A DNA stretch of 64,000 bases from Oopsacas minuta. Its lineage: Eukaryota; Animalia; Porifera. This document shows positions 33,448 through 63,088 of the stretch, piece by piece. A program made the position numbers and the translations under genes. Location: contig JAKMXF010000324.1 in the NCBI GenBank assembly GCA_024704765.1, positions 186,001 to 250,000 on the forward strand. Reading direction: 5' to 3'. The notes below the pieces were generated by a model that searched no databases, was not told the origin of the DNA, and was given only the letters and a program-made list of their open reading frames with translations. The first letter of the stretch is position 1. Every line of letters starts with the position of its first letter.

Positions 33448-36400
33448 TCAATTGATCTTTTCTTCGATATCTTTTTCGCTATCCTCGCTTGATTCATTTG
33501 GTTCATCCAGAGCCCATGACTGCACTTTACCGTCAGCTAACAGTGCGTAGCATATCATACCGAATAGACAGATCTCTGCTGTTACCCAGAATACATTTAT
33601 CCATTCCTTACGGTATATCTCAATATATGCAGGGCTTCTTGCTGGTATAGTTGAAGGAGGCTAGATACAAGACGGAGAAATGAATTCGAACTTTTAAATG
33701 ATATTAACAGAGATTATACATTGTATATCTGTTATAAGAACATCCTTGGGAGTAGCAATACATGTACTTATAACCTACATTTCCTGTATATATGTAAATG
33801 TGCTTAATTCTCCGCTTAAAATCTTAATGTACAGAGAGTGAATGTTTGTTCCTTAGATAGTTCGTACTTTAGCAAGGAAATTTATGAAAAATACGATTTA
33901 CAAATAGGCGAACTCTACTGTAGTTACAGAGTCCTATTCCTGAGGTCGAATGACCCTATTAACCGGTGTCTACTGTAATTAATTTATCTTGAAATTTGGA
34001 AAAAATCAGAGAAAAACTTTTTCGAAAAATTTCAAGGTGTTGATGACGCAACATATGTAAATACATTAGATTTTCGAAATTTTTCACATATTTACAAAAA
34101 CAAAATTTTTGAAAAATCTCAACTTTTCTTGAAAGTTCCCTTCCCCCTATGCAAACTGTTAAATGAATTCTTACCATTTTTGCTACAGCTTTAGCAAGCT
34201 GAGGTCCAAGAAATCCTGGTATAGTACCAAACATATTTGTTATACCCATGATGATACCTGAATATCTTGGGGCAATATCTAAGTTATTAACATTATGTCC
34301 TGCGATGACCATTCCTTGTAGACCTATGCCCAGTGATAGAAATACTATTGAGGTTGTTATAGTTGTACCGAAGTATCCACAGATTATTAGGAAGAATCCT
34401 GAGAAGAAAAGCCCTAGATTGGAAGAGATGGGTGATAGTCGTGGGTTATATGCAATAGACATAGACGCCATATGTAAATTATTAATTTGACTGCAGTGTA
34501 AGGGTTGCCGATATATGATACCAGTTTCCTCTATTCTGTCATATTCCCGTATGTGGAGGTTCATTTTATAGAAATCGGAATTCGCTCTATTTCACTCCGT
34601 TTCCAGAAGTTCCCGAGCTAATGTATAGTCAACTCCAGTATATCTAAGCTCAAGGGACAGCGATAATTACTCAGATATAACCGATGTACTTTGACGGTTT
34701 GTGACCATATTTGTACAACTTCAGACTTCGATATTTGCGGGTATTCCGATATATCCGTGTTTGGTATAACAGGAGTTGACTTTTTGGAAATATCAAACAC
34801 TGACAACTATTCGGTTACCTGCATTAGTGAATATCTTTCTCGTTGTGCCAGTACTTATCCATCTCTTCCTCACAAAATCAGCTATCTCTCCTGACGTCAT
34901 ATTAACTACTAAGAACACTGCATAGGGTATAGCTGATAGAAGTCCATTCTAGATTAATACAGATAAAATATTGAATAAGTTTGCACCTTTTATCTACACA
35001 CAATTCTGTGATATGGTGAGATGAATTGCCTCGAGACGTAATTTTCGGGAAGAGAGCACTCTGACTTACATTTTTGCAATTTTGAGCATATAAATAGAGT
35101 TATAGTTATCGAGATATTTGTCACATAAATACAGTATTCCGCTTACCAAAGCCACTGGTTAATCGGACCACTTTCCAGAAACAGGACCATACGAATAGTG
35201 TTATATTTCTCTGGTTATTCGGGTCAAAATTGTCTGATCCCGAGGTGGCCCTATTACGCTTAGTCTACTGTATTTATGCTTTAAAATTCTTCTTAACAAA
35301 AGCACAAATTTAGAAACCCACGACGATCAATTTTCCAGCTATAACATTCCCTTATTTGCTGTATTGGAATGGACTTGACTGAAGAACAAAGGAAAAAGTA
35401 TGCTTATCTTGATCAAGACCCTCTAGCTAACTTCAGGAAGCAAAGAGAGCTAGATTTCGACAGAGCAGTGGATATTAGAGTATTGAAAATGCTAGATGCT
35501 AAGCTGTATGTATGTAATCTCAGAGAGACTGTAAACTCAGCGAGGAGATGTAGAAAGATAAATACACTGTATTTCTCATTCTACCAAGCTTATAGAAAGA
35601 AGTGGGGGTATATGGATTAATTGTAATTACAAGTGTTTGTTTGTTGTTTGTTGTTACGCATATATAAACACGAATATTTGTACGTAATTATGTATATTGC
35701 CATGAAGTAATGAACAATGGACATTGAGGCCCCCTCCTGTCATCAGTGGACCCTAGGTTGTGAACCTCTGTTATAAATAAACTAGAACTCACCGTCCTTA
35801 TGTCTAGTCCTATAGTCTCCTGTAAGAATGTAGGCATACAGGTTAGCAGTGTATAGAACCCCCAGTTATTGCAGAATGATGCAATACTGATACCCCACAC
35901 GGGGAGAGATGTCCATATACGGAACCAAGGAGTATATCTCTAAAAACACATGATTAGGATAGTTATTGTTAATTACGGGGACAAAATCTCTTTCTAACAT
36001 TTATACAATAATATTCCTCAAATTTCTAAATTAACCATAAACTGTATTTTCTTCTAAACACACCCATTCGTTTTTCCGCCAATTTCTAGCGAGTTTCCAC
36101 AGATGAATTTTGACCTCTCAAAGAAACACCCTAACGGGCTGGGTAATCCATTCCTAAAACGTAGCCTAATGGCCGCAAGTACTGAAGAGCATAGCTGTGA
36201 GTTTGGTTCTTCCAAGTTTTACGCTCTCTGCGGTTTTGGAGGTATTCTAAGCTGCGGACTAACTCATACGGCCGTCGTTCCGCTAGATGTCGTGAAGTGT
36301 AGGATACAAGTAGACCCTATTAAGTACCCAGGTATCATGAAAGGGTTCATGGTTACCACAAGGGAGGGAGGAATTCGTGCTTTGGGGAAAGGTTGGGCAC

Positions 36401-39400
36401 CGACACTCATCGGTTATTCAATGCAGGGACTTTGTAAGTTCGGTTTCTACGAAGTTTTCAAAATTTTCTACTCGGGATTACTTGGAGAGGAAAACACATA
36501 TCTCTGGAGAACTTCTCTCTATTTAGCTGCCAGTGCAAGCGCCGAGTTCTTCGCTGACATAGCTCTCGCCCCCATGGAAGCCGTTAAGGTCCGTATTCAG
36601 ACACAGCCCGGTTGGGCGAACACCTTACGAGAAGGGGTCCCTAAGCTGATGCAGGAGGAAGGAGTCTGGGGGTTATATAAAGGTATTGCGCCTCTTTGGA
36701 TGAGACAGATCCCATACACCATGATGAAATTCGCCGCGTTTGAACGAACAGTTGAGTTCCTTTACCGCTACGTTGTGCCTAAGCCTCGATCAGACTGTAG
36801 CAAGCCAGAGCAACTCGTTGTAACCTTCGCAGCTGGTTACATAGCTGGTGTATTTTGCGCTATAGTCTCTCACCCAGCTGATTCCGTCGTTTCTAAACTC
36901 AATTCTGACAAAGGGTCAACAGCTATGCAAGCTGCTAAGAAGCTTGGAATGCGTGGGCTATGGAAAGGCCTCGGGTTAAGAATCATTATGATAGGTACAC
37001 TGACTGCTCTCCAGTGGTTTATCTATGATTCTGTCAAAGTATATTTCAGATTACCCCGTCCACCTCCACCGACAATGCCAGAAAGTTTGAGACGAAAACT
37101 CGAAGCGAAGAAGGCGAAATAAACTACAGAACGTATACTAGACATAGGAAATAGGTTACACTGACTCTATCAGTCGTGTATGTAGTGTATTTATGAATTA
37201 TATTATCTCACTGTGTGTAGGTATATTGTTGTATTGTGTTAAAATATAGAGTAATACTTCTGGAAACGGAGTGAAAATAAATAGAGCAAATTCCTAGCAG
37301 AGGGACGAGGTATAATGTTTCGGCTTCACAGGCTCCCCGTTTGTGGTGGTAACACTATTATTGTTTGTATTTCTTAGAGAAATTTCCAAACTGAATTTGT
37401 CAGGTTTTATTAGTGAATGAGCTTCTTGATTACACACCGTATTAAGAACATATCTACATTTATATCCAAGATGTTCGGACAGCTTAAACGCGGAGAAGAG
37501 AATCGAAAGAGAACTCTGGAGCTAAAATCTAAAAGTATTTATACATCCACATCTAACACAAACAAACAAACATTCGCAGGTAAATACAAACAATTTGGAG
37601 GTACACAAACAAGTTCAATTGTATTCTCGTTGAAAGATGAAAACCAATTTATTGTTGAGGCCAAATTCAATGAGAATTTAATCGAAACTTTCAAAGTATC
37701 GCCTGTTTGGAGTTACGACCCTCTGACGAAGGCTTGGGTATTCCCTTTAGAATATTACAAACAATTAACCTCACGAATCGAGAAAAACTGTCCCGGTCTA
37801 ACTATAGAACACATTCCTTCTACAATATTCACAATATTAAAAGAGAAATATAATGACAACCTTTCGATAGATTCTACGGATATACCTAATGAGCTTAGGA
37901 CGTCATTGCTCCCATATCAGGTTGAAGGTGTTAAGTTTTGTATAGCTAGAAATGGTAGAGCGATTATAGCCGATGAGATGGGATTAGGGAAAACGATACA
38001 AGCGATCGCTGTCGCTTGTTATTTCCAGTTGAAATGGCCTTTGCTGATTATGTGTCCAAGTTCACTGCGTTTAGGATGGAAGGAACAGCTGATCAAATGG
38101 GTACCGTGGTTGGAAGACGATTCAATACACATTCCATTCTCTACCGCGGAGATTTCTACCAATTTAATGTCACAGCCTGTTACAATCCTTTCGTACGATT
38201 TGGTTGTCAAGTTAACTAATATTAAAATGAAGACTGATATCTGGAAATATTCAATACTAATAGCTGATGAATCACATTTTCTCAAAAATGCGAAAAGTGC
38301 CCGAACGAAAGCAGCCCTCCCCCTCTTAAAACAAGCGGACCATGTCCTCCTACTCACTGGTACCCCTGCCCTAAGTCGCCCCATGGAGCTGTACCCTCAA
38401 ATAACTGCCGTGGATAAGCAATTAAAAATGTCCAACTACCAATTTGCCAAGAGATACTGCGACGCGAAGGAAACCCCGTGGGGTTGGGATTATTCCGGGG
38501 CCAGTCGCCTCGCTGAACTACAAATATATTTAAATAAACGTGTTATGATTCGTAGAAGTAAATGCGAAGTTTTACAAAGTTTGCCATCAAAAACACGCAA
38601 AACAGTCCAACTCAAATTAGAAGAAATCAAGATTAAAGAACTCAAACAAAACGTTAGTGAATTAAGTAATAAGTCAAATGGGGATCGATACGGCTGTATG
38701 CTAGAGTTATTTGCTAAAACAGCACAAGCAAAAGCTCAATCCGTTTGTGAGTATTTAATCAAATTAATTGAAGATAGCGTTGAGTTAGAAAATGAGGAAT
38801 TATCAGATTCAAACGGAGAAGATGAAGAGATTCTTGTCAAACATAAACCGTTGAAAATTATTGTGTTTTTCCATCATAAATGCATGTTAGCGGAATTGGA
38901 GAAAGCTCTTACGTCACATAAGATTGGTTATATGAAGATTGAGGGAGCTACGGCTCCGTTAGCCAGGCAATCCGCTTGTGATCTCTTCCAACACGGTGAG
39001 GCTGCCTCATGTCGCATCGCTCTTCTCTCCCTCAAAGCTGCAGGAACGGGATTGACCCTGACTGCAGCAAAGATTGTATTGTTCGCTGAGTTATTCTGGA
39101 ATCCTGGTGATCTCCGGCAAGCAGAAGACCGTGCTCACCGTCTCGGGCAGGACCAAGATGTTGAAATACAATACTTAGTTGGTAAGGGTACGATTGATGA
39201 TAAAATATGGCCGCTTCTACAAAGGAAACTCGAAGTCCTTAGCCAAGCAGGATTAGCTAATAATACGAAAACAGATTCTTTCGCTACGAGCTCAGTTCTA
39301 AACGAACTTTTTAATTCACAAGAAAATGCTATTACAACTTCTCAAACACAGCAAAGATCGATGACCGATTTTATAGTTTCTTCGCCAAAAAGATTGAAAA

Positions 39401-42400
39401 CTGAAATTGAAGATACGACTTTAGGAGAACTTGAGAATTTAGATACAGAACAAGTTAACGATCTTCTAGACGGAGATTGGAGCGATTAGTTTACCATGGT
39501 CGTTTATTATTATAATTGATTTACAAAGGTGTCTAGCTTGCTTGTTTTTATAGCCCAGCAGACACTATATGCAAAATTATATTTCCCATTCGATTGTTAA
39601 GAAATGTGAATTCCAAACTCAGGCAAAACTTCACATTAATGTATATTACCTTTTTCCGCGTAAGTTCGTTTCTCAGACTATTCTCTATATACAACCTCTC
39701 TTTCTGTGATATCCTAGGATTATTAGAAGGCTTATCAAAAGCATACAGCGTCCAGAATATGAACCAAATCGTCCCTCCAACACCTACAAACATTATATAT
39801 TAATTAAGCACTGTTTAGATAACTACATGCACTTACCAAATGTGTAGAATACCCAAGACCATCCTAGGTATTGACAGATAACACCTGATACTGGAAATGC
39901 TATTATGTTACCGAGTTGAATACCTGCAATAGATATTAATAACAATTCCGATTTTTAGTTAATTCTGCCAACAATTTCCGGTCGTCTGGCATATGAATAT
40001 ACACTCATCTCCTGTCATATCGAAGCTCAAGGGGCCGCGATAATTACTTCGATATATCCGTGTTCGATATAACTGGAGTTGACTGTAGTAAGAATGAATT
40101 AACAAATTGGAAACTAACTCACCCATATATGAGAAAGACAGTAATCTGCTCCTCTCTGCAGGGGGTGCCCAGCTACCCCATACAGCTAGCAGAGAAGGGA
40201 ATGTTACTCCCTACTATAGGAAAACGCAATAGCGAAGAGAATATTAATACAAACAAAATCAATGCCTTATTAATGAAAATCGTACAGATTTCAACAGCCC
40301 CTTCGTGTCTATATGGTATAGGTACAGTTGACTCCATTTATAGGCTCACACGGGACAAGGACATTTTGACCCGATTGTATCGTAATATTTACTAATAAAA
40401 ATGACAAATATTAGCAATTTCTAATGTCAGAAGTAACAGAACAGCAAGAAACAGGCTATATCCATATCCAAGAATTACTAGATCTTGAATTAGTCCCAAA
40501 TACTACTGAGGATGACTATTCAGACGATGATTATCTACAATATATTCTAGACACAGATGGATGTAATACACAATTATGTGATGTGGAACTAACACCTGAA
40601 GGGGAAATTCCTTTAGAATTGTGGAGTGAATGTTTTAAGTGTTTGTTTAGTGGGCAATGGTGGTCAATTATCGTTCTTCTTAAGGTGATGGGAGTACTAA
40701 AACCTAGTGAAAAACTAGCAAAAGATCTCCTGGATGTTATCAAAGCTAAAGTTGAAATGGTATTGAAAGAAAGCAAGGATGATACAGAAAGTGAAAGCGA
40801 AAGTTTTTCAAGCTCGAGTTTAGAAGACAGTGATTCGAGTGATTTTACAGATTAGATAGAAACCGGAGAACCGCCGAATGACAGTTTTACTTTTACAAAA
40901 TATTTTGTTAATCACGATATTTTGAGTTTTAACTTACCATTTTTCACACTTGTTAATATTATCATTTATATTTCTATCTTTTCAGCTCATTGGAAACTTC
41001 CCTTGCAGGGGTTTCTCTCGGTGTTTGGAAGGCACGTCAAGGTGTTAGTTCCGCAGCCATGAACGATACAGAGCCGACCATGAGACTCAAATTAGTACAT
41101 GATCAATATGCTACCGTCCAAATAAGGTGTATACCAGGGTGGCCCCTGCAAGAAAAATTACCGGTTCCCTTGGTGTAGATTATTGTCATACTTCATCAAA
41201 ATATTCACTCATAATTTTAGTAATACTCTAATGTCAGAACAACAAGAAGTGACAACCATCCATGACATACCAGAAACAGATCTTATCGATTTAAATTCTA
41301 CATCCTCTGAAAGCGAATACGAAGATGATGACGTCTCAGATGATCCACAGGTAATTCTCGACAAAGCAGGTTGTACTACACAATTATCGAATCTGCAACT
41401 ATCACCTGAAGGAGATATTCCATTAGAATTGTTAACTGAATGCGTACAATGTTTGTTATATGACAAATACTGGCCTGCATTGATTCTGTGTAAAGCAATG
41501 TCATTGCTAAAACCTGGAAATCAATTGTCAAATCATCTACTGGAAGCTATCACCGCTAAGATTGATATAGACTCAAAACAGTGCGATGATGATTCAGAAA
41601 CCTGTGAAAGTGAAAGCGAAAGCGAAAGCGAAAGTGAAACATCAAACTCGAGTATAGAAGACACCGAATCGAGTGATTCAACAGAAAGCGAAACCGAAAT
41701 GCCGCCGAACGAAAATATCCATTCTTGTCCAGCGTGTACTCACTGAATTAAGTAATTAAATGTTTGTTAATTGCGACACTGAGCCACAAATCTCACACTT
41801 ATTATTCATATAATTAATCTCTCATTCCTTTGACTTGATTTGTTATTTTTTAACAAATATTATTAATATGAATTCGAACCTATTTTATGTACACTAATCA
41901 ATAGTGTGATAATCTGTTTATCGTCTTTATATTCATACAAAATGTGTAAATACAATTCTCATAAGAATATTTGAATTGTTAAGCGTTACCATGAATAGTA
42001 GCCAGGGTGATTATTCATGGGAAACAATCACATACTACACACATCATAAATCATAGCATTCTATACAAAGCGTTTCGATACATCCGCGTTTGACATAACG
42101 GGAGTTCATTGTATGTCAAGTTTGGTTATCATAGTTACCACAAATTGTATAAAGATTGTTCTTACCTCTCCTATTCCCTCCATTACTCTGACAGCTACTA
42201 GACACCACACATTAATCCTGGCTACCAGAGGAGTGATTAGTGTGAGTATAACTGTAACGAATATCCCCAGTCCGAACACCCATTTCCCTCCGAAATATGT
42301 CGATAACCAGCCCCCAGGTATCTGTGTGAGTAAATAGCCGTAGAAGAAGGCAGCTAGTACCCAACCTATATTACCATATATGGAATTAGATAATATGTGG

Positions 42401-45400
42401 ATAGTTTTTTCTTAGTTTCATTCTGGAAATATTCTCCTACCTTGTTCTTCATCACTCCAGTTAAAATCTCCCTAAATACAAGAATAAATATAGAAATACG
42501 AAGTGGATTCCCTCGATAATCTAATATACAAACTCATGGATAATATCTGCTTCTTATGACTTATATTAATTTATTCACACTGTAGCTAGATGTACTCAGA
42601 ACCTAGAGTCTTGAGTAAGGTACCAGAGGCTTCAGGGCTCTCCCCTCTGGACCCCTCACTCCCTAAAATAGACCCACAAGCACTACGAGCTAAGAACTAC
42701 CCTACCCCTGGTATTTACGCTATTGAGCCAGGCTCATATATGGATTTTTCTCCTCTACGTGCTAATACCACAGTAGCTAATGGAGCTATGACGTCACGTA
42801 TACATACAGGGGAACCTATACCAGCTCTCGCCGCATACCAGAAGATGAATAAGAAAGGTAGTCCTGTGTTTACAATCATTCTCTATGTCTTAACTTAAAT
42901 ACATTTCTGCATAGCTAAAATGACCCGCGGTAACTAATGTATAATTCAGTCAACTTCCTAATTGTGAATTTTATCATGTTTTTATTGCAAAACCATAAGA
43001 TAGCAATCTTACATTTATTGAAATCAAAAATTATTTATTTATCAATTATTTTTGTTTATTTAGTTATATCTCAAGAAAGTGTCACTAGTCGTTCCCAAAT
43101 CAAACCTCAGCCAAACAAAGGACAAATCTCTAAACCAAATGTAGTAGCTCCTCTTCCTAAATCTACAAACACCTCAACTCTACCCCAGCTGCCCCCTACT
43201 CTAATTCTTCACCAAAGGAATTTCTCCACTAAAATCCCCTCTCCACCTGTCTCACGGAAACTGCAATCCCAGAACAGGAAGAAAACCGTCAGTCGGGGGA
43301 AGCGACGCGATGAATCGACAATTGACCGTCCAATAGATAACGTCATGGAACAGCTTACCAAGATTGAAGATCCGTTAAAACTTGTTGAACTACTTGTAGG
43401 ACGAGAAGATTTAGGGTTCTTCTACATGGCAACGAGGAATAAGAATAGGAATGTAAACCGTAGCGTAAACCCGTATAACCTAAGGATTGTCTCCTGGGAG
43501 AATGTTGACCATGCGGACTACAGGACTATCAGCTCAAAAGGTGTGACACAATTCCGGGAAGGTGAGGAAATGGATTTCACACCTCTGGCCGACTGGAAGA
43601 GAGAATATTACAACTATCATCATCTCATAAACATCAAAATATTCTCGAAATTCCAACTCTGGAAAGCATTTTCAACTTGGCGTAGAAATGTCCGTCGCGG
43701 CATAATTCACCATCGAAAGAAATCTCTACAAGACAAATTGTTTTTCTTGAATCCTGACTTGTCACCTGCCCTGTTGACAGTATCTAATGAGTGTCATGCC
43801 ATTTGTAAAACACAAAACTTAAGTTGCTGGCAAGAAAATAAAATTTACTCCAAACAAGCTTTCTTGGATGAACAATATCAACAAATGAGTCAGGTTTCAT
43901 TCACACTTGCCAAATTTCGCGAGGCAATCAAATTCTTTGTCATAAAAGCATGTCAACGCGTGCTGCTACGAAACATGTTTATACCAGATGAAGTATTTCG
44001 CGTTACTCCACCAGAGTTAACAGGATTGTCAGAGGAAGTTCTGAATATCTACGAGACAGGACTACAAAAACAGGAGTACTGTGGTCCCCCAGAGGAGCGT
44101 AACGCACCTCTGGACATCCAAGAGAAGAGTTTGTACACTGAGCAAGCAGCTAAACGTGTTCTCTGTCACCGTCTGTCTAGATTTGTCCGTTTGACAGACT
44201 ACATGATTCTTAGTGCGTTACACGGTCTATCATTCAACTCCCTTAATAGTTTACTGTGTATGCTTAATGACTGTGTTTTATTGGCTTTCACACCCAAGGA
44301 TTTGATGGCTGAATTATCCGAGAGATTGAGACAGGAGAGGGAGAGAAGGGAACTGGGGGAGACAGCTGAGGAGGAGGAGGATGTCATTGAGGCTGACACC
44401 TCGGTGAAGCCAGTTTTCAAAACTTCTCTCCGTCTAGAGGGTTCAACTCTCTTCTCTGACCCCCCTGTCGACGAATTCCAACAGCTGATTGAGGAAATAG
44501 GTCAAAGATTTAAAGACAGTGTCCTCGCAATGCCTCGGTTAATAATTGATCGCATATTCGTGTCATACGTGCGACCGATTATTAACAAACGTCGCGAAGA
44601 GGGACCGCCAGATCCTCCTAGCCTCGAAATAATCTTAGAGGATGATCCAAAGATAGAAGAGCTTTTGATTCGTATGCGTGACACGATGGGACAAGCTTTT
44701 GAGAAAGTCCATGAGTACGCCAGGATGTGGGAACCTTTTAGAGTATATTTTGAAGAGAACCAAAAAATGGATTTGAAACAATTGGCGGAAGAGGAACATG
44801 ATGTAGAGTTTTTCGCTACCTCCCTTGAGAAATATGATAGACAGTACTATCTAGCTGAGAAATGCCCTGAGAAAATGACTGTTGGAGCATTTATGGTTGA
44901 TACGAGAGAGCTTAAGAAGCAGCTGAAGCCTTCCACAATGCGTTGTCTGGAGGTTATACACCAAATTCTACCTAAAATGGCTAAAGAGCGATTGGATCAT
45001 CTGATTGAGTTTGCTCAAGATGCAAACGCAAGACTAGTCAATGTACCTTCCACTACGAAAGAGTATGTTGAGAATATATCTTTCATAAACAGTGTACAAC
45101 TTCAAATGACCTCAATTGATGACGATACGCTGGTTGTACGGGAGTTGTATGATTTAATCCAGAGATTCGTAGTACCGTGTGACGCGGAGGATATGGCAAC
45201 TTATATGACACTGGAACCAGGCATGGCCAGTCTCAGGACAACGATTGATAAATCTGTTAGCGAGTTGGAGAAGAAGAAAAATGAGTTTAGAACCTATCTT
45301 GAAAACGATATCACTGAGTTGGGGAAAGAAGTCCGCGAAGTGAAGAGGAAAGCTGACCAACCGATGATTTTGGACCCCAACTCGGAACCGCAAGAGATTA

Positions 45401-48400
45401 CACTTTGTCTATCTAATCTACAACAGAGAATGGACTCCCTCAATGACATGGCCCAGGAGTATAGAAGTTATCAGAAGAAGTTCCAGATGGAACTAACTCG
45501 TTTCGACGAGCTCGAGGAGACCCATGCAGAACTGAAACTGAAACATACTCTATGGAATGTGCAAAGTGAGTTTGATACCGTCAGCGAGGAGTGGGGACAA
45601 ACTAAATTATGTGACATACAACCTGATACTATGTCGTCACAGGTTACCCGGTATGTCAAGACAACGTTCCAATTAGACAAGGGTCTACCTCCGAATCAAA
45701 TCGTCCCTCAGTTGAAAGCGAAAGTCAGTCGGATGAAAGACAAAATGCCAACCATAACCGACTTATGTAATCCTAATTTAAAACAGAGACACTGGGCACA
45801 ACTTTCAGCCCTTGTCAACAAAGAAATGAAACCCGATCTCTTAACAATTCAAGACTTAGATGAGATGGCTATATTCGGTATTGCAGAACAAGTCCAGGAA
45901 ATATCTGGGCAAGCTTCCTCAGAAGCTAATCTATCAAATATGCTACAAATGGTCGAAGATACATGGAAGAAAACCGAATTTTTCGTCTTGAATCATCGTG
46001 ACACAAAAGATGTATTTATACTCGGTGGGACTGAGGATGTACAGATCGCGTTAGATGATAGTTTAGTTCAGATTAGTACGATTCTAGGTTCAAGGCATGT
46101 GGGGCCGATTAAACCAAAGGTTGAGGATATGCACAATCAGCTGATTTTGTTCTCAGAGACTTTGGATGCTTGGTTGGACTGTCAGCATCAATGGCTGTAT
46201 CTGGAGAGTATATTCACTGCCCCTGATATTCAAAGACAGTTGCCGGAAGAAGCGAAAGACTTTGCGACGGTTGACAAATCTTGGAAAGAGATTATGCGAG
46301 ACGTTAAGAAACTTCCTAAAGCACTTCGTGCCTGTACAGCTCCTGGAAGACTCGAGGCATTCCAACAGAACAACCAGTTGCTAGAGAAGATACAAAAATG
46401 TTTGGAGGAATATTTGGAGACGAAAAGACTGTCTTTCCCAAGATTTTACTTCCTTTCAAACGACGAACTACTCGAAATCCTCTCTCAAACAAGAAATCCA
46501 CAAGCAGTCCAACCTCATTTACGCAAATGTTTCGATGCCATTTCGAAGTTAGATTTCGCAAAGACGAAGAACGAAATGGGAGAGGAAGTATTCACAACAG
46601 ATATTCTAGCAATGCTATCCCCTGAGGGAGAGCGTGTCCCCTCACGAAGGGCCTAAAGGCTCGAGGCAATGTGGAGTCCTGGCTAAACCATGTTGAAGAG
46701 AGTATGATGAAATCTCTGTATAGAATTACCAAAGCAGCATTGCAGGATTTTCAACAGAAAGCTCGTCACGATTGGTGCATACTCCATCCGAGTCAAATCG
46801 TACTCACAGTCTCACAGGTAATGTGGGCACAAGACATCACTGAGGCTCTGATGGATAAAGACGATCCAATAAGTAAAGTTAAACAATGCGAAGAACAGTG
46901 CTATGCAAATCTTACCAAACTAGCTACAATGGTTAGAGGCAACCTCTCAAAGCTAAGTCGCAACCTCGTCACTACATTAATCACACTTGACGTACACTCC
47001 CGTGATATCGTATCGGAGATGCGAGTGAATGAGACGAAAGGAGTGACGGACTTCGGTTGGGTTAAGAACCTACGTTACTACTGGGAGGCAGATGAAGATG
47101 ATTGCATTGTCCGCATGTCGAATTCTAACTATCTATACGGGTATGAGTATTTAGGTGCATGTTCTAGGTTAGTTGTCACACCTCTTACTGATAGGTGTTA
47201 TCTCTGTCTTATGGGAGCTCTCCAGTTGGATTTAGGGGGTGCGCCGGCTGGTCCCGCGGGTACAGGGAAAACTGAGACAGTTAAGGATCTCGCCAAAGGC
47301 CTCGCTAAGCAGTGTGTCGTGTTCAACTGTTCGGAAGGTTTGGATTTCAAAATGATGGGTCGCTTTTTCTCTGGACTAGCACAGTCGGGTGCTTGGTGCT
47401 GCTTCGATGAGTTTAATAGGATTGATATAGAAGTGTTGTCTGTAATAGCGCAACAAATACTCACAATTCGTAACGCGAAATCGCATAAATTAGAGAAATT
47501 CTTGTTCGAAGGCCGCGAGATAAAACTCAACAGAACCTGTTCCGTTTTTATCACCATGAATCCCGGTTATGCCGGTCGTACTGAGTTACCGGATAACTTG
47601 AAAGCACTTTTCCGTCCGTTCGCCATGATGGTGCCCGACTATGCCCTGATTGCTGAAGTTATATTATACTCAGAAGGTTTCGAGTCAAGCAAGGGCCTCG
47701 CACAGAAAATGGTACAAATGTACAAGCTATGTTCTGAGCAGTTATCCCAGCAATCACATTATGACTTTGGCATGCGAGCTGTAAAATCTGTTCTTGTAAT
47801 GGCCGGTGCCTTGAAGAGAGAAAATCCCGATAAACACGAAGATGTAGTGTTAATCCGCGCACTGAGAGATTCTAATCTGCCAAAATTCCTTAAACAAGAT
47901 GCTATATTATTCAAAGCTATTCTCCAGGACTTATTCCCAGGGATTGTACTTCCTGAACACGATTATGGTAAGTTCCAAACTGCAATACAGGATTGTCTAA
48001 AGTTGAATGGATTCCAAGTCCAGGCGAATTTGATAAAGAAAATAATACAGTTGCATGAGACTATGATCGTACGTCACGGCGTTATGTTAGTGGGGCCTAC
48101 TGGCGGGGGTAAAACCACATGCTATCGCACCCTCAAGGAGACCCTCGGGAAAATGAAAGAGGTTGAAGTCAGTCCATATTACCAGAAGGTCCGCACAGAT
48201 GTTTTGAACCCAAAAGCTGTGGCCATGGGTGAATTGTACGGTGAAGTTAATAAGTTGACTCTAGAATGGCAGGATGGTTTGATGGCTGTCTGCGTGAGAG
48301 AAGCCGTCAAAGATACGACAGAGGATCAAAAATGGATTGTATGCGATGGCCCTGTTGACGCTTTGTGGATAGAGAACATGAATACTGTATTGGATGATAA

Positions 48401-51400
48401 TAAAATGTTATGTCTAGCAAACTCTGAGCGAATAAAACTTAATCCAACTATTCACATGTTATTTGAGGTCCAGGATTTAGCTGTAGCAAGCCCAGCAACG
48501 GTTAGTAGATGTGGAATGGTGTATATTGACCCTGAAGAGCTGGGGTGGCGTCCATTCGTGAGATCTTGGATCATGGAGAGGTTATCTTCCTCAATGAAAG
48601 ACGCAACTAAAGAATATCTCTTCAATTTATTTGATAATTACATTGATCCCGGTCTAAAGTTCGTTAGGAAAATGTGTCTGCAGGTGATCGACCAAGTTGA
48701 TATGGGGAAGGTGACGGGTCTCTGTGCTCTCCTTGAGGTGTTACTATTAGATACCATCGAAGCGAGACACGAGGCCAGAGATAAAAAGATCCAACCTGGG
48801 GTAGACATGTCAGAGGACCCGGTAAAATTGCATCCACTAATCGCATCACTATTCATATTCTGCTATACCTGGAATATAGCTGGGAACGTCACACAAAAAA
48901 CTATGGAGAATTGGGACGGATTTGTTCGTGAGAATTTCTCTGATCTAACCGAGGCCAGATTACCTCCTTCAGGCGATATGTTTGAATATTACGTAGACAT
49001 GGAATCGAGACGATTTGAAAAATGGGAACATATTCTGCCCGAGTTCAAATACGATCGAGAAGTTCCTTATTTCGATATTTTAGTGCCGACGATTGACACA
49101 GTGCGTTACGGGTTCTTAATGGGGAAATTGTTAGGTCAGAGACGGTCTGTGTTATTCACAGGGGAAACTGGGGTGGGTAAGAGTGTTATAGCTAAGGGAC
49201 AGCTTCTGGAAATGCAGGAGAAAGGGTTCTACCTTCCTGTCACTTTAAACTTCTCAGCTCAAACTTCCTCAAAACGTACACAAGAAATAATTGAAAGCAA
49301 ACTTGAGAAAAAACGCAAAACAATATTAGGTGCGCCAGCTGGAAAACATATTGTCATATTTGTGGATGATATGAATATGCCGAAACTTGACCGTTACGGT
49401 TCTCAGCCGCCAATCGAACTCTTACGGCAGTACATGGACTTCAGTGGATTCTACGATCGAGAAAAGTTGTTTTGGAAGGAAATCCGTGACGTTACGATTT
49501 CAGCAGCATGTGGCCCTCCAAGTGGTGGCCGTAATCCCGTTACCCCGCGGATTATGCGGCATTTCACAATGTTCGCATTGCCGAGTCCGTCTGATATTTC
49601 CCAGAAAGGAATATTTAGTGCTATTGTCACTGGATTCCTGGAAGATTTCACCGCCGAAGTTAAAGAAATGTCCGATTCTATTGTCAATGCTTCTATTGAG
49701 ATATACGCACGTATAAGTACAGATCTACTACCCACGCCAGATAAGAGTCATTACACATTCAATCTAAGAGATTTATCCAAATGCATACAGGGGATACTTC
49801 AAGCCGACCCGAGCATTATTAGAGACAAGAATCAAATGTTTCGTTTGTTCATGCACGAATCTATGCGAGCTTTTCACGATCGGTTGATCAATAAGACTGA
49901 TAAGGGATATTTCTATAATATTCTCTCTGAGATTAGTTTGAAGTATTTCAGTAAAGACGTGGCCCCAGAAAAACTAGAAAACGAACCGATTTTATTTGGA
50001 GATTTTATGAAGATGGGTGCTCCTCCTTCAGATAGAATTTATGAGGATTTGATGGACGTTAGAAAGGTAAGGAATGTTTTAGGCGACTATCTTGACGACT
50101 TTAACATGAACAGCACGAAGGAAATGAATTTAGTTTTCTTTATGGACGCGACTGAACACGTTTCAAGGATCGCTCGTATGGTGCGACAGCCACGAGGTAA
50201 CGCATTGTTAGTAGGGGTAGGAGGCACTGGAAAGCAGAGTCTAACACGACTCGCTGCGCACATGAACGGTTATAAATGCTTCCAAATTGAACTGACTCGT
50301 GGCTACAATTACGAATCATTTCGCGAAGATTTACGGCGATTATACAACATAGCAGGTGTTGAGAACCAAGACACAGTATTCCTGTTTACAGACACTCAAA
50401 TAGTTGTTGAAGAATTCCTTGAGGACATCAATAATATGCTCAATTCTGGAGAAGTACCAAATTTATTCGACGCGGAGGAGTATGAGAAGATAATCAACGC
50501 CACACGGCCTTTTGCGAAAGAAGTAGGCATTCCAGAGGGTGACAGAGATGGAATTTATAACTATTTCATCAGTAGAGTACAGGATAGATTGCATATAGTT
50601 ATTTGTATGAGTCCTGTGGGTGACATGTTCCGCTCAAGGTGTCGAATGTTCCCCTCACTTGTGAATTGCTGTACAATCGATTGGTTCACTGAATGGCCAA
50701 GAGAAGCTCTACTGTCTGTCGCGAAAAATCTTTTCGAAGAGGTTGAGACAATAGAAGAGGCTTTGAAGGTAAAAATTGCTAGAATGTGTGTAGAAATACA
50801 CACGAGCGTTAGTACTATGGCAGAACGTTTCTTCGCAGAGCTCCGTAGACGCTACTACACAACACCTACTTCCTATCTGGAACTGATCACGCTCTATTTA
50901 CAAATGTTAGATGAAAAGAGAAAACAGCTCACTATTTCTAGAGATCGTGTTGCGAATGGCTTGAAGAAACTGGAAGAAACCAATACTGTGGTTGATGATA
51001 TGCAGAAGGAGTTGACTGAGCTAGAGCCACAACTTAAGAAACAATCTGAAGAGACTGCTGCGCTTATGGAGACTCTAGAAGCTGACCAGAAGGAAGCGGA
51101 TAGAGTAAGGAAGATAGTTGTTAAGGACCAGGCTAGCGCTCAGATAAAAACGGAGGAAACTCAGGCAATAGCTGCTGATGCTCAGAAAGATTTAGATATT
51201 GCCCTACCTGCGTTAGAGAACGCCAATAAAGCACTTAATTCTTTAGAGAAAAGCGATATTTCGGAGGTGAGAACTTTCGCAAAACCTCCTCCAATGGTTT
51301 TAACCGTTATGGAGTCTGTGTGCATTCTCTTTGGACAGCGTCCAGACTGGAGTACTGGTAAAACTTTACTGACAGATCCCAATTTTATCAAACGTCTATT

Positions 51401-54400
51401 CGACTATGACAAAGATAATATCCCAGAGAACTTTCTACGTAAACTCAAGAAATATATTGAAAATCCTAGTTTTAACGCTGAAGAAGTTGGTAGGAGTAGT
51501 AGAGCTTGTAAATCAATTGTAATGTGGGTCATTGCTGTTGATATATATGCCAAGGTGTTTAAGGAGGTTGAGCCGAAACGACAGAGACTTGAAGCCGCTC
51601 AAAATGAGCTGGCTATCGTGACAAGTGAGCTCGAGAAGAAAGAGGAAGAACTTAGAATTGTTGAGGATAAAATTGATCAACTAAAGGCAGCCTTCAATGA
51701 CAGTCTCGCTGAGAAAGAAAGGCTTGAGTTTACAATGGCGCAGACTGCTGCCCGGTTAGAGAGAGCTGGTCGCCTCACCTCTGCGCTGGCAGACGAGCAA
51801 ATACGCTGGGACGAGAACGTGACACAGTTTAACGCACAGCTAGGCAATGTAGTTGGTGACGTGTTCATTGCTGCGGCATGTGTCGCATATTTCGGTGCAT
51901 TCACGTCCTCGTATAGGATTGAGCTAGTAGCTTCATGGATTGAGAAATGCAAGGAGTTAGAAATTTCTGTCTCAGATAATTTATCTTTGAATAGAGTACT
52001 TGCTGATCCATATGAAATTCGACAGTGGAATGCCAGTGGTTTGCCTAGAGACGCAGTTTCAACTGAGAATGCGATTCTATGCACACGATCTCGTCGTTGG
52101 CCGTTGATGATTGATCCACAGGACCAGGCGAACCGTTGGGTTAAGACAATGGAAACTAAAAACGGTTTGAAGGTTATCAAATTAACAGACACTAACTATC
52201 TTCGGACATTAGAGAACGCTATCCGTATGGGTACACCTGTGCTCCTTGAGGAAGTGGAAGAGGCACTAGACCCTTCTTTAGAACCAATCCTTCTCAAACA
52301 AACATTCACGAAAGGTGGCCGATTGCTTATTCGTCTAGGGGACACTGATGTAGATTATGATAAGAATTTCAGGTTCTATATGACCTCCAAAATGTCTAAC
52401 CCTCATTATCTGCCAGAAGTATCAATCAAAGTTACAATAATCAATTTCACTGTGACACTATCTGGCCTAGAAGATCAACTACTTAGCGATGTAGTGCGCC
52501 TTGAGAGACCTGAGTTAGAAGAGAAGAGAAATGAATTGGTTGTAGCAATCAATCATGATAAACACCAGTTGAAAGGCATTGAGGACAAAATTTTGAAAAT
52601 GTTGTATCATGCAGAGGGTAATGTGTTAGATAACGAAGCGTTGGTAAGTGCTTTAGGTGCCAGTAAGCACACAGCTGAGGAGATCTCAGAGCGATTGGCT
52701 CAGGCCGAGTTGACTGAGAGAGATATCCTAGCTGCGCGTGAGAAATATCGTACCGTCGCTACTCGTGGGTCTCTCATATACTTTGTGATAGCTACACTAC
52801 CTGACATAGATCCTATGTATCAGTTTTCATTGAAATACTTTCAACAGTTTTTCAATGCCTGTATTGAGTCTAGTGAGAAAAGTTCTGTGTTGGATACTAG
52901 GCTGAATACACTGCTCACTAACACGACTCAGGTTTCCTATACGAACGTAGCACGCGGTCTCTTTGAACAGCATAAACTTGTATTCTCATTCATGCTGTGT
53001 TGTAATATCTTGAGGGAAAGGAAAGATGTTTTTGAGGACGATTGGAATTTCTTCTTGAGGGGTGCCGCCGCGGTTGAGAAGGAGAGAGAAGAGAAACCGA
53101 ATCAACAATGGTTGACAAACGATGTTTGGATACAGTGTTTAGATTTGGAGGAGAATCTCCCCGAATTCAAGGGCCTTTCTAGAGAAATCCTCGCCACACA
53201 TATTACTATATCCTACGGAGATATTGAAATAGCTTTGAATCCGCCAACAGCTGATGAGTATGTCGAGGTAGGAGAATTGCCCGATAACCTGGAAGAATTT
53301 CGTAGTAACAACCCAGATACGATAATAGGCCATTGGAATGAGAGACTGACTGACTTTCAGAAAATTATCTTAATAAAATCATTCAGTGAGGAGAATATTA
53401 TCCAAGCAGCTTCTCTGTTCGTAACACGGAATCTTGGGCAAATATTCATAGAAAGTCCTTCCATAGAGTTAAGCTTGTTATACCAAGATATAACCAAAAC
53501 AACACCCCTAATATTCATATTGTCAACAGGTTCCGATCCTATGTCCTCCTTCCTACGTTTTGCAGAGGATATGAACTACAACGAGCGTTTCAATACTATT
53601 TCTCTTGGACAGGGTCAAGGGCCTGTAGCTATGAATATGATATCTAAAGCCAAGGTTTCCGGCGATTGGGTGTTCTTGCAAAATTGTCATCTGGCTGCTT
53701 CGTGGATGCCGGAGCTTGAAATTATAGTGAAAGGATTTCAAATCCAAAACTCTGAGATGAATGAGAATTTCCGCCTGTATTTGAGTTCTCTGCCCACAGC
53801 TTCATTCCCTGTCTCTGTTCTCCAAGATTCAGTAAAGGTCACAAATGAACCGCCAAAGGGCCTACGAGCTAATCTCAAACGCTCATTTGCAGAGATGAAA
53901 CCCTCCTTCTTTGAAGACCACTACTTAGATTTAACTTGGAGGAAAATGGTTTTCGGAATCTGTCTATTTCATGCGGTGATTTTAGAGAGGAAAAAGTTTG
54001 GCCCGCTCGGCTGGAATATTCGCTACGAGTTCACTGACAAAGACAGAGAGACCGCTCTCCTGAACCTTAAAATGTTCCTGACGGGTGACGACATCCCGTG
54101 GGACGCCCTGATTTTTATTTCCGGAGAGATTACATATGGGGGGAGAGTCACTGATGATTGGGATCAGCGTTGTCTAAGAACGATCCTAACTCGGTTCTTC
54201 GCTCCAATAACTCTTGAACCTGGCTATATGTTCTCTGAATCTGGTTTCTACTATGCACCAGAAGCTCCTTACATAACTGATTATCGTGAGTATATTGATG
54301 GCTTCCCGATGTCGGACGATCCTGAGATTTTTGGTATGCACGATAATGCGAATATCACATACCAAATGCAAGAAGGTCAGGCTCTAATAAAAACTGTATT

Positions 54401-55893
54401 ATCTGTACAGCCACGTACTTCATCGATTGGAGGTGGTAAGACTAGTGATGATATAGTGTTTGAGCTAGCTGAAAGCGTGCTAAGCAAATTCCCGGAATTC
54501 CTAGATCTTGATAATGCTATGCCTGAGCTCTTTGAGCAAAATGAAGAAGGTCAGATCAAATCTCTTTCTACAGTATTATCCCAGGAGATAGACAGATATA
54601 ACGCACTATTGAAAGTTGTTAAGAATAGCATGCGAACAATACAAAAAGCTATCAAAGGATTCGTTGTCATGTCAGAGCAATTGGAGAAAGTTTACAGTAG
54701 CTTCATTAATAACCAAGTTCCAGGAATTTGGGAGCGTGCCGCCTATCCATCAATGAAGCCCCTCGGCTCATGGATTCAAGATCTAGTGTATCGTATACAC
54801 TTTATTTCCACATGGATGGTGTATGGCAACCCTTGTTCCTACTGGATTTCGGGTTTCTTCTTCCCGCAAGGCTTTCTAACCGGTACTTTACAAGACCATG
54901 CAAGGAAGTATCATGAACCAATTGATGAACTATCATTCTATTACCAGGTTAAGCCGAACTGCAGGCATCAAAAGGATGTTTACGAGCAAGCAATGGCGAC
55001 TGCCCCTGGTGAGAAACTTAAGATGGACAGTGAAGTTGTTGTTCCTAGAGATGGGGTAATAGTGCATGGTCTGTTCCTCGACGCATGTCGATGGGATGTA
55101 AACACTATGTTACTGTCCAACCAGAAATTCCGTGAAATGAATCCTCCCTTACCTGTAATGCATATGGAACCTCGTAGGAACTTCGTTAGAGACCCGAGTT
55201 ATTATTCTGCCCCTCTTTATAAGACGGCCGCGCGTGCTGGAGTGCTTTCTACGACAGGACATTCTACGAACTTTGTGGTAGCAGTTGACCTCCCAGCGGA
55301 TAGAGACAGTGGTTTCTGGATCTCCCGCGGAGCTGCTCTACTCACTCAACTCAGTGATTAACTGTTATTCATTTATTTACCCCAACTAATTCAAGTATTT
55401 ATTGTTTTTGTTGATATTATTATTTACTCACTTTGTTGGTATTATGATCTATCGAATTAATTTGTGTGTGTTGACAAAACCATTGTAATCTTGCGAAAAT
55501 TGTAAATGAACCTTGTTAATGCTTGCTACACGACGTTACCATTTCATCCCTATTTTCTACAATTTCCTCACTACATATTTGACTCAATAAACAAAATTAA
55601 CTCACTTGATATTTGACAGTTGCGTTAGAACCAGTTCCTACTATCACCGTATGATTCACCATTTGTACCAGAGCGATACTGAGATTTACTCTCAAAGCAT
55701 ATACCACACATAATCCGGTACCTAGGAGGATTCCTAGGATATATCTCTCTGGAATGCAGGGTAATAGCTTCGGGAATATTTTGTAGAAACAATCTGGGTT
55801 GTATTTCTGTTCCTCCTCCTCATTTATTTTATACTCTTTATTTTCGTCTTTTATCAGCCATTCTTCTTCTGGGCTTTTAATTGTGTCAGCCAT
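33448..55893 (-). CDS. SLC17A: SLC17 family (sialin/VGLUT-like) MFS anion transporter, 10 exons, ~518 aa; host gene for six nested genes
   Basis: Exons in transcription order: 55606-55893, 42441-42471, 42166-42365, 40123-40210, 39837-39923, 39650-39783, 35793-35939, 34819-34948, 34175-34413, 33448-33660; all GT-AG with matching phases (1557 nt). Motifs YALRVNLSIALV.M, FNW, FFYGYLLTQIPGG, GVTFP....W..WAPPAERSRL, NNLDIAPRYSGIIMGITN. Confidence 0.93.
34626..34782. mobile_element. MITE family 1 copy in SLC17 intron 8
   Basis: AGTCAACTCCAGTATATC..GCTCAAGGGAC...TTTGACGGTTTG...CAGGAGTTGACT. Confidence 0.8.
35131..35273. mobile_element. MITE family 2 copy (CAGTA...TACTG ends, TA flanks)
   Basis: TACAGTATTCCGCTTA ... 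TACGCTTAGTCTACTGTA with internal GGTTAATCGG / GGTTATTCGGG. Confidence 0.6.
35369..35620 (+). CDS. NDUFB10: NADH dehydrogenase subunit NDUFB10 (PDSW)-like, short form, nested in SLC17 intron 7
   Basis: DFDRAVDIRVLKMLDAKLYVCNLRETVNSARRCRK..YQAYRKKWG aligns by eye to the NDUFB10 C-terminal block (R.VD..I...L..C..RE..N....C.K....AY) with CX11C spacing. Not confirmed by a search. Confidence 0.65.
   Translation: MDLTEEQRKKYAYLDQDPLANFRKQRELDFDRAVDIRVLKMLDAKLYVCNLRETVNSARRCRKINTLYFSFYQAYRKKWGYMD
36103..37122 (+). CDS. SLC25A3: Mitochondrial phosphate carrier, intron-less, nested in SLC17 intron 6
   Basis: [79 protein letters not shown]. Confidence 0.97.
   Translation: [339 protein letters not shown]
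37417..39489 (+). CDS. SMARCAL1: SMARCAL1 annealing helicase (single HARP plus SNF2 ATPase), intron-less, nested in SLC17 intron 6
   Basis: N-terminal EENRKR RPA-binding-like motif, HARP (SYDPLTKAWVFPLEYY), IADEMGLGKT, DESH, LTGTPALSRP.EL, ELFWNPGDLRQAEDRAHRLGQ. Start may be ATG 37471. Confidence 0.92.
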   Translation: MSFLITHRIKNISTFISKMFGQLKRGEENRKRTLELKSKSIYTSTSNTNKQTFAGKYKQFGGTQTSSIVFSLKDENQFIVEAKFNENLIETFKVSPVWSYDPLTKAWVFPLEYYKQLTSRIEKNCPGLTIEHIPSTIFTILKEKYNDNLSIDSTDIPNELRTSLLPYQVEGVKFCIARNGRAIIADEMGLGKTIQAIAVACYFQLKWPLLIMCPSSLRLGWKEQLIKWVPWLEDDSIHIPFSTAEISTNLMSQPVTILSYDLVVKLTNIKMKTDIWKYSILIADESHFLKNAKSARTKAALPLLKQADHVLLLTGTPALSRPMELYPQITAVDKQLKMSNYQFAKRYCDAKETPWGWDYSGASRLAELQIYLNKRVMIRRSKCEVLQSLPSKTRKTVQLKLEEIKIKELKQNVSELSNKSNGDRYGCMLELFAKTAQAKAQSVCEYLIKLIEDSVELENEELSDSNGEDEEILVKHKPLKIIVFFHHKCMLAELEKALTSHKIGYMKIEGATAPLARQSACDLFQHGEAASCRIALLSLKAAGTGLTLTAAKIVLFAELFWNPGDLRQAEDRAHRLGQDQDVEIQYLVGKGTIDDKIWPLLQRKLEVLSQAGLANNTKTDSFATSSVLNELFNSQENAITTSQTQQRSMTDFIVSSPKRLKTEIEDTTLGELENLDTEQVNDLLDGDWSD
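40002..40085. mobile_element. Internally deleted MITE family 1 copy, TA-flanked
   Basis: CTCCTGTCATATCGAAGCTCAAGGGG...GATATAACTGGAGTTGACTG. Confidence 0.75.
40424..40855 (+). CDS. ERICH2: ERICH2-like acidic protein, paralog A, nested in SLC17 intron 3
   Basis: Acidic flanks around IPLELWSECFKC...LLKVM..LKPSEKLAK; clear paralog of 41231-41746. Similarity to the ERICH2 core (PLELMAEF...A..LC.....EP.N) is judged from memory. Confidence 0.55.
   Translation: MSEVTEQQETGYIHIQELLDLELVPNTTEDDYSDDDYLQYILDTDGCNTQLCDVELTPEGEIPLELWSECFKCLFSGQWWSIIVLLKVMGVLKPSEKLAKDLLDVIKAKVEMVLKESKDDTESESESFSSSSLEDSDSSDFTD
41231..41746 (+). CDS. ERICH2: ERICH2-like acidic protein, paralog B, nested in SLC17 intron 3
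   Basis: IPLELLTECVQCLLYDKYWPALILCKAMSLLKPGN matches the ERICH2 core pattern PLEL..E......Y..A..LC......P.N; D/E/S-rich flanks; ATG at 41231. Confidence 0.62.
   Translation: MSEQQEVTTIHDIPETDLIDLNSTSSESEYEDDDVSDDPQVILDKAGCTTQLSNLQLSPEGDIPLELLTECVQCLLYDKYWPALILCKAMSLLKPGNQLSNHLLEAITAKIDIDSKQCDDDSETCESESESESESETSNSSIEDTESSDSTESETEMPPNENIHSCPACTH
42590..55361 (+). CDS. DNAH6: Axonemal inner-arm dynein heavy chain DNAH6, 2 exons, ~4188 aa, one 1-nt frameshift near 46638-46641; nested in SLC17 intron 1
   Basis: Exons 42590-42857 and 43064-55361 (phase 1, GT-AG). AAA P-loops GPAGTGKT, GPTGGGKT, GETGVGKS, GVGGTGKQ; CYLCLMGALQLDLGG and KGLKARGNVE are typical of DNAH6. Confidence 0.92.
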
Positions 55894-56074: not shown

Positions 56075-56748
56075 TATCTATCTATTAACCTGTGTAGATT
56101 CTAGAAATTTTGTAAATAGGGGCAAAAAGTGGGATGTTGCTGGCTTGAGGGCGATTTCTTTGTAATTCACCCCAGTTTTCTAATACTATTGATATCGTTC
56201 CAACCATTTCCTATATAAGTATACTGTATTAAATGTATTAATTTGGATTGCCTACTAATCAGCAATCATGTCAGCAACTCAAGTTACAAAACTCTCTTCG
56301 GAGAATATCTTTTGTTTGTAATTATGTTTCATTGAGCCTTTTTTGCGAGTTCGCATCGGACGCCTCAGTTACAAGTTGTAATTATCACAATTTAGTATAC
56401 AAAACTATTAACCAAATACTACGAGAAGATAACCACGAATTAGTATGTATAGTATGCGTATATTGTCTGTGTTTATATGTCTTCAATATTTGTACACGGA
56501 TAGGTATAAGCCAGGGATAGTGGGTGAGATGGTCCTACTTTTTGAGGTCTTCCGACGGGCAACGGATACCCGATAGCTCTTACAAGGCACCAAAGTACCC
56601 AAAACTCTGAAATTCCAATCTGTGCAGACAGCTTAGTAAAGTTAAAAACACTAAAAAATCCTTTCGGCACAGATTTTAATTTAGAATTTTTGTTTTTCAA
56701 CCAAAGTTTGTAATTTATCAGTGAGTTTATGGATAAAAATAGCATAGA

Positions 56749-62609: not shown

Positions 62610-62780
62610 TTTATATTTGTAATATAATTGTATAATTCGTCGTTTTCGATCATTTATATGGAATTATTAGACTTTTCAGTGTATTTATGTTCAATCAAAT
62701 TCCACTTATTTTAACGTATTTATCAGAGTGATTTTCTGTATATTTATTTCGTATTCTGAGTGGTTTATTTTATTCTATTG

Positions 62781-62891
62781 GGTCTGTCTACCACCTAGGA
62801 CCCCTTATACCCATTTCAACACATTCTGTGGACCCCTGCTCTCCTCCAGAGACCACTAAGGGCTCCATGAGCCACAGATTGGGATCCGCTA
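62781..62891. mobile_element. hAT-type MITE, reverse orientation
   Basis: TCTGTGGACCCCTGCT...CCACAGATTGGGATCCGCTA is the reverse complement of motifs in 4054-4165. Confidence 0.55.
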
Positions 62892-63088
62892 CTCTAGCAA
62901 GCATTGTAAAAGTAATAATATTACCAGAAATTACATGTAGTGGGTGTCGCCTATATTAACCATCTCCTGGAAAACGGTACTCATATACTTTTGTATAATT
63001 CTATCGGTTATAAGAACATATTTTATTACCCCAAGGGTGTTCTTATTCGCGATAAACACCGTAATATGTTTTTAATAATAGCTTATAA

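Follow-up and report, generated by a model that had tools for sequence, protein, structure and literature searches.

A sialin-like SLC17 transporter gene interleaved with six opposite-strand genes in the glass sponge Oopsacas minuta

Introduction

Genes nested inside other genes are frequent in glass sponges: Aphrocallistes vastus has 2432 of them (12.4% of genes) and 12,409 single-exon transcripts (Francis et al. 2023, PMC10282587), the glassin gene being one example of a nested single-exon gene, and the extensive microsynteny among glass sponges extends to many nests that are conserved (PMC10282587). The genome paper of Oopsacas minuta makes no mention of nested genes (PMC10280926). In Drosophila melanogaster ~10% of genes are nested, and in 71% of these cases the nested and the including gene lie on opposite strands (Lee and Chang 2013, PMC3814207); this excess was explained by selection against mis-splicing, and the including genes are conserved (PMC3814207). 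Here we analyse a 64,000-nt stretch of the O. minuta genome (GCA_024704765.1, contig JAKMXF010000324.1, positions 186,001 to 250,000), hereafter the window, in whose coordinates all positions are given. In it, a minus-strand gene for a putative sialin-like SLC17 anion transporter (the host) is interleaved with six plus-strand genes (the guests). We consider it highly probable that this is a genuine and old nested-gene locus in a compact glass-sponge genome, in which the minus-strand host exons occupy the spacers of a plus-strand row of genes.

Results

A ten-exon host gene within a row of opposite-strand genes

The host spans 33448-55893 on the minus strand, where ten exons join into an intact frame of 1557 nt (518 codons, no internal stop) that runs from an ATG at 55893 to a TGA at 33450-33448. 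Its exons were first found as short open stretches with transporter-like sequence in the minus-strand translation of 33000-56200 and were then joined at GT..AG. All nine introns have these ends, with sizes of 13134, 75, 1955, 199, 53, 3710, 844, 405 and 514 nt. The plus strand carries B56 and others upstream, followed by an NDUFB10-like gene, SLC25A3, SMARCAL1, two ERICH2-like genes, DNAH6 and an SLC12 gene. All guest coding sequences fall inside host introns, namely introns 1 (DNAH6), 3 (both ERICH2-like genes), 6 (SLC25A3 and SMARCAL1) and 7 (the NDUFB10-like gene), and gaps of 118-420 nt separate the guest reading frames from the host exons.

An initial annotation of the window, made from its letters without database searches, had proposed a 1.5-kb transporter coding sequence spread over 22 kb and six opposite-strand guests in these four introns. 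Our exon model agrees with it in every coordinate, including the junctions 55606^42471, 42166^40210, 39650^35939 and 35793^34948, and in finding every junction GT-AG and in phase; the coordinates and strands of the six guests were likewise confirmed.

Host exons are joined in RNA across five of the six guests

Four sequencing runs of one sample (X1 to X4) contain the 6-kb stretch of the locus over which reads were analysed (34300-40299). X1-X3 are DNA-like, with flat depth and long contigs that are collinear with the window over this stretch and break only at a repeat, and they show none of the joints of X4. X4 is RNA-like: although 78% of the sequence words in the 6 kb, those of introns among them, occur in it, its depth varies from ~70 in introns to 600-1000 in SMARCAL1, ~29,800 in the NDUFB10-like gene and 68,000-90,000 in SLC25A3.

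Joints in X4 bridge introns 4, 6, 7 and 8, skipping 199, 3710, 844 and 405 nt, respectively. They coincide precisely with the predicted splice sites and have CT..AC ends (equivalent to minus-strand GT..AG) and a depth of ~660-1000. The intron 6 joint spans SLC25A3 and SMARCAL1 and the intron 7 joint spans the NDUFB10-like gene, so that two of the junctions singled out by the initial annotation (39650^35939 and 35793^34948) are seen directly. A third, 42166^40210, is seen through a 100-nt loose end at 40212 that runs on into the last part of exon 3, in reverse complement; intron 3 is therefore removed together with both ERICH2-like genes. The host is transcribed at least from exon 3 to exon 9, these exons are joined in RNA as predicted over introns holding five of the six guests, and ordinary GT-AG splicing takes out these guest-bearing introns. 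The guests themselves have almost no introns. The three that were assayed, SMARCAL1, SLC25A3 and the NDUFB10-like gene, are transcribed independently from the opposite strand, and at depths of 600 to 90,000 they occur together with the host (~1000) in X4, a bulk RNA-like run.

X4 also contains a minor joint at 34412/34819, with a depth of 10 versus 987, which skips 406 instead of 405 nt and would shift the host frame; it is probably splicing noise.

The interleaved order is shared with related sponges

Loci of related sponges were fetched using open reading frames (ORFs) of exon 1 and SMARCAL1 orthologues, and the host protein was mapped onto them; SMARCAL1 worked as bait, whereas SLC25A3 was too conserved to single out sponge orthologues. 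Three other assemblies have the same interleaved order as the window: exons 10, 9 and 8, the NDUFB10-like gene, exon 7, SLC25A3, SMARCAL1, exons 6, 5 and 4, ERICH2-like, exons 3 and 2, DNAH6 and exon 1. In ERZ20067936 (loci L003 and L002) this order lies on one contig, exons 10 through 1 spanning ~27 kb, in ERZ25069837 (L005 and L007) on one contig with 25.3 kb, and in ERZ25071281 (L004 and L001) on two haplotigs that are 98% identical. Exon 1 adjoins an opposite-strand dynein in six assemblies, including ERZ25072730, ERZ25072740 and the BUSC20-1 metagenome scaffolds, in which this dynein has ~3976-4105 amino acids (aa).

Between the window species and the others synonymous sites are saturated (proportion of synonymous differences, pS, 0.72), and the ratio of nonsynonymous to synonymous change (dN/dS) in host exons is 0.05-0.08. 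Together with the shared order, these values argue that the nest is old and that the host is under strong purifying selection, and they exclude a chimera; with the 518-aa frame free of stops, they also agree with the earlier description of the host as intact. ERICH2-like genes number 1, 1, 2 and 4 in the four species, arranged in tandem and always within host intron 3.

At L005:12731-16555, host introns 3 and 4 carry on the host strand a 332-aa DDE_3/HTH transposase ORF and a 771-aa ORF without a Pfam family, which looks like a transposon insertion into the nest.

The host is a putative sialin-like SLC17 transporter

Matches to PF07690 (MFS_1) occur in exons 3, 4, 7 and 9 at profile positions 36-99, 100-127, 194-235 and 281-347, that is, in order, with exon 3 as the only exon above the gathering score by itself. 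Used as single queries against all PDB chains, exons 3 and 9 matched only sialin and VGLUT2/3, and sialin is the best solved match for both (Table 1). The spliced protein aligns as a single piece (aa 21-512) to a 495-aa SLC17 homologue with 40% identity and, over aa 28-498, to Ixodes sialin with 34% identity. This one-piece alignment places the host model far beyond chance, and because no segment is missing or extra in it, every exon junction is supported, that between exons 1, 2 and 3 included. An alignment of all exon pieces to full-length sialin made with MAFFT was discarded as a profile, as most pieces were misplaced.

The arginine of transmembrane helix 1 (TM1) is kept (ALRVNLSIA in exon 1), and so are the R/E/E of TM4, where host VRVMEGIGE aligns with LRALEGLGE at 167-175 of sialin. 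Sialin R168, E171 and E175 are the conserved charged residues of TM4. On its sequence, then, the host is identified as a putative sialin-like SLC17 anion transporter, in agreement with its first labelling as SLC17. It resembles sialin (SLC17A5) and the VGLUTs (SLC17A6-8) in matching over its whole length and in sharing the TM1 arginine and the TM4 R/E/E, and differs from them in being only 27-40% identical to the full-length SLC17 homologues compared.

A dynein heavy chain gene in intron 1

The largest guest encodes an axonemal inner-arm dynein heavy chain, and its coding span (12.8 kb) occupies 97% of the 13,134 nt of host intron 1, which had been described as almost filled. Its motor domain set is complete in Pfam, from AAA_6 through Dynein_C, and its tail and linker match three DNAH6 chains in PDB at 1e-283, versus 1e-75 for DNAH2/3/7/12/1 (human inner-arm). 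The reading frame is not uninterrupted in this assembly: a 1-nt frameshift lies in a run of four C at 46638-46641. Orthologues in other assemblies read GERVPLTKGLKARG straight through and are single ORFs of ~3976-4105 aa. The frameshift seems to be either an assembly error in the homopolymer or an allele of very recent origin; an old pseudogene is disfavoured because the flanks are 83-97% identical to the orthologues at the protein level.

DNAH6 probably has one small intron, a candidate of 206 nt (42858-43063, GT-AG, phase 1) that follows an 89-codon first exon. This first exon is conserved in four species up to QKMNKK, and the remaining 12.3 kb of coding sequence form a single exon. Just 118 nt separate the DNAH6 ATG and host exon 2, a distance that ranges from 63 to 260 nt in relatives.

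Host exon 1 and its predicted junction across DNAH6

Homology and conserved splice sites make it very likely that exon 1 joins exon 2 (55606^42471) across the whole of DNAH6. Exon 1 begins with ATG, holds the sole TM1, which carries the SLC17 motif, reaches its donor GTGAGT in phase 0 and aligns to the N-termini of full-length homologues within the same single alignment as the other exons. In eight orthologous exon 1 ORFs from other assemblies conservation stops at the same donor, TY[QK]|GT. The microexon 2 (G[DE]FNW...) has a conserved AG in phase 0 and no start codon, and there is no room for another first exon because exon 2 lies 63-260 nt from the dynein start codon in relatives. A search with exon 1 alone against a representative protein library and 90% clusters returned only genomic ORFs that read through the donor, and no spliced exon 1-2 protein.

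The other guests

Guests were identified by Pfam and PDB searches, and the names DNAH6, SLC25A3, SMARCAL1 and NDUFB10 that they had first been given passed family tests. SLC25A3 and SMARCAL1 fill 83% of host intron 6. The closest named proteins of the former are SLC25A3, with 74-84% identity among the matches listed, while the latter is ~40-43% identical (E ~1e-130) to named SMARCAL1 homologues. The NDUFB10-like guest scores 28.9 bits against PF10249 (cut-off 22.2), matching positions 37-104 of this 126-position profile. Four species conserve it over its full length, from Met to stop; phmmer against PDB found no match for it. For the two acidic genes of intron 3, which share a conserved core, with a C-terminal CPxCT in the longer copy, a Pfam search matched no family. 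Their label comes from a language-model comparison, in which they share 213-216 features with clusters named 'glutamate-rich protein 2' (feature score 0.94), and we regard 'ERICH2-like' as reasonable but unproven. A scan of 33000-56500 with Rfam and for tRNAs found no non-coding guests.

Table 1. Exons of the host gene and its guests in the window, with the ERICH2-like loci of related assemblies (X4, RNA-like run)
Feature	Coordinates	Strand	Location	Remarks
Host exon 1	55606-55893	-		96 codons; N-terminus and TM1 with RVNLS motif
Host exon 2	42441-42471	-		31-nt microexon, GDFNWSDEEQ; L003, L004 and L005 have AG and GT at the same positions
Host exon 3	42166-42365	-		TM2-TM4; R/E/E of LRxxEGxGE motif; MFS_1 E=2.4e-10; sialin 110-175 E=7.6e-17
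Host exon 4	40123-40210	-		X4 joint 39921/40121 (cut +2), 199 nt skipped
Host exon 5	39837-39923	-		X4 loose ends 39784 and 39835, as expected if intron 5 (53 nt) is spliced out
Host exon 6	39650-39783	-		X4 joint 35939-39650, 3710 nt skipped, CT..AC ends, depth 998
Host exon 7	35793-35939	-		X4 joints on both sides
Host exon 8	34819-34948	-		X4 joints 34948-35793 (844 nt skipped) and 34412-34818 (405 nt skipped)
Host exon 9	34175-34413	-		TM10-TM11; sialin 376-447 E=3.4e-15; X4 joint
Host exon 10	33448-33660	-		Stop codon TGA; conserved in L003, L004 and L005
Guest 1, axonemal inner-arm dynein heavy chain DNAH6	42590-55361	+	Host intron 1	Exon 1 42590-42857, exon 2 43064-55361
Guest 2, ERICH2-like acidic protein	41183-41746	+	Host intron 3	Probable ATG 41231; family conserved in relatives
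Guest 3, shorter ERICH2-like paralogue	40424-40855	+	Host intron 3	Without C-terminal CPxCT motif; 41% identical to guest 2
Guest 4, SMARCAL1-like annealing helicase	37417-39489	+	Host intron 6	Single exon, 690 aa; HARP, SNF2-rel_dom, Helicase_C
Guest 5, SLC25A3 mitochondrial phosphate carrier	36103-37122	+	Host intron 6	Single exon, 339 aa; Mito_carr x3
Guest 6, NDUFB10-like complex I subunit	35369-35620	+	Host intron 7	83 aa
ERICH2-like loci	L003:16167-16727; L004:13551-17226; L005:16837-17436; window 40424-41746			

Neighbouring gene, repeats and variants

A multi-exon SLC12 cation-chloride cotransporter gene (~56250-63400, plus strand) stands head to head with host exon 1, and related assemblies have the same neighbour; a bidirectional promoter region, a few hundred bases long, may therefore serve both transporter genes. 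Pieces of a short interspersed repeat resembling a miniature inverted-repeat transposable element sit in host introns 8 (34640-34781), 4 (40017-40084) and 3 (42071-42110) and in the spacer between SLC25A3 and SMARCAL1 (~37256-37297); at these pieces the DNA-like runs are 15-60 times deeper than in the flanks, and their contigs are broken or cross-joined. Immediately behind the SMARCAL1 stop (39489) a 28-nt insertion is found in a contig of run X1 only, and four single-base differences (38571, 39494, 39541 and 39967) vary among the runs of the one sample; both are probably heterozygosity.

Discussion

Read as an old nested-gene locus, the nest would be a frozen by-product of genome compaction and belong to the ordinary architecture of a compact, intron-poor genome, rather than being a regulatory device. 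Guests on the opposite strand would offer the host no competing splice sites, and the layout would be frozen because the interleaved genes could not be separated without breaking the host; it would presumably persist with nothing selecting against it.

Some points weigh against this reading. The neutrality of the arrangement is something that we infer. The types of the runs are not on record, X4 being called RNA by its depth profile and joints, and contigs are strandless, the host strand being taken from the CT..AC ends. The DNAH6 promoter or 5′ untranslated region may overlap host exons, so that DNAH6 is perhaps not strictly intronic, and the 55606^42471 junction lies outside the read-covered 34300-40299.

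One alternative takes the nest for a regulatory unit, conserved because host transcription through the opposite-strand guests tunes them or, in individual cells, excludes them, by transcriptional interference or antisense RNA. The host pre-mRNA is necessarily antisense to every guest, all related assemblies examined retain the layout although synonymous divergence has reached saturation, and the guests keep only 120-420 nt for their own control regions, abutting host exons. We nonetheless regard this explanation as unlikely, given that the host and the assayed guests are present together in the bulk RNA-like run and that glass sponges in general show microsynteny and conservation of nests (PMC10282587), which makes a special function unnecessary to account for the conservation. 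That the nest is kept as a working unit, with antisense host transcription setting or gating guest expression by cell type (for instance, the dynein off where the transporter is on), seems to us quite improbable; if true, it would mean that transcriptional interference regulates several genes together, and does so as a conserved arrangement, in an early-branching animal. Nothing that we found requires a regulatory role for the nesting or an effect of antisense transcription on the guests.

The remaining alternatives concern the gene model itself. If exon 1 were foreign to the transporter transcript and transcription started near exon 2, DNAH6 would be a mere neighbour and five genes would be nested; the reads, which cover 34300-40299, do not reach the junction 55606^42471, and the protein collections searched with exon 1 yielded no protein of transcript origin in which exons 1 and 2 are linked. 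Against this stand exon 1 as the only TM1 with the SLC17 motif, aligned with homologue N-termini in one alignment, its initial ATG, its phase 0 donor, which is conserved in eight relatives, and an exon 2 that has a conserved phase 0 AG, lacks its own start codon and leaves, with 118 nt to the DNAH6 ATG, no alternative first exon. A transporter of the major facilitator superfamily without TM1 would not fold, and we give this alternative a very small chance. That the locus is a chimera of the assembly, or what is left of a dead transporter gene, could be suspected from the unusual layout and the one frameshift in DNAH6, but is barely conceivable and is refuted by our results: over 34300-40299 the X1-X3 contigs are collinear with the window, the repeat being their only break, independent assemblies of other sponge species have the same order, and the host frame is intact, spliced in RNA and evolving at a dN/dS of 0.05-0.08.

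An old nested-gene locus, then, is the reading that we carry into the comparison with known nests. It shows cleanly, with support from RNA and with stability over evolution, the extent that gene interleaving can reach in a compact animal genome: six unrelated genes, mostly essential, stretch a 1.5-kb coding sequence over 22 kb, which still splices correctly. It is a useful test case for gene-prediction pipelines, some of which would overlook or break up the host gene, and also a natural experiment on the importance of antisense read-through for housekeeping genes with high expression. The locus itself is not described in the glass-sponge literature examined. Nested genes had been described at the outset as common in glass sponges, which the ~12% of A. 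vastus genes bears out (PMC10282587); with such a share, the further opinion that six guests are extreme is unsupported by anything measured.

The nests of A. vastus are likewise single-exon or nearly intron-free genes in the introns of a compact genome, and many are shared between glass sponges (PMC10282587). Compared with them, the SLC17 locus places six guests, one of them of 12.8 kb, in four introns of one 1.5-kb coding sequence. With Drosophila it shares opposite-strand guests and a conserved including gene. Drosophila guests tend to be young, fast-evolving, testis-biased duplicates in long introns (PMC3814207), unlike those of the SLC17 locus, five of six of which are ancient single-copy housekeeping or ciliary genes, mostly essential, that nearly fill their introns. 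The locus is a good and well-supported example of a known phenomenon, and no new kind of system.

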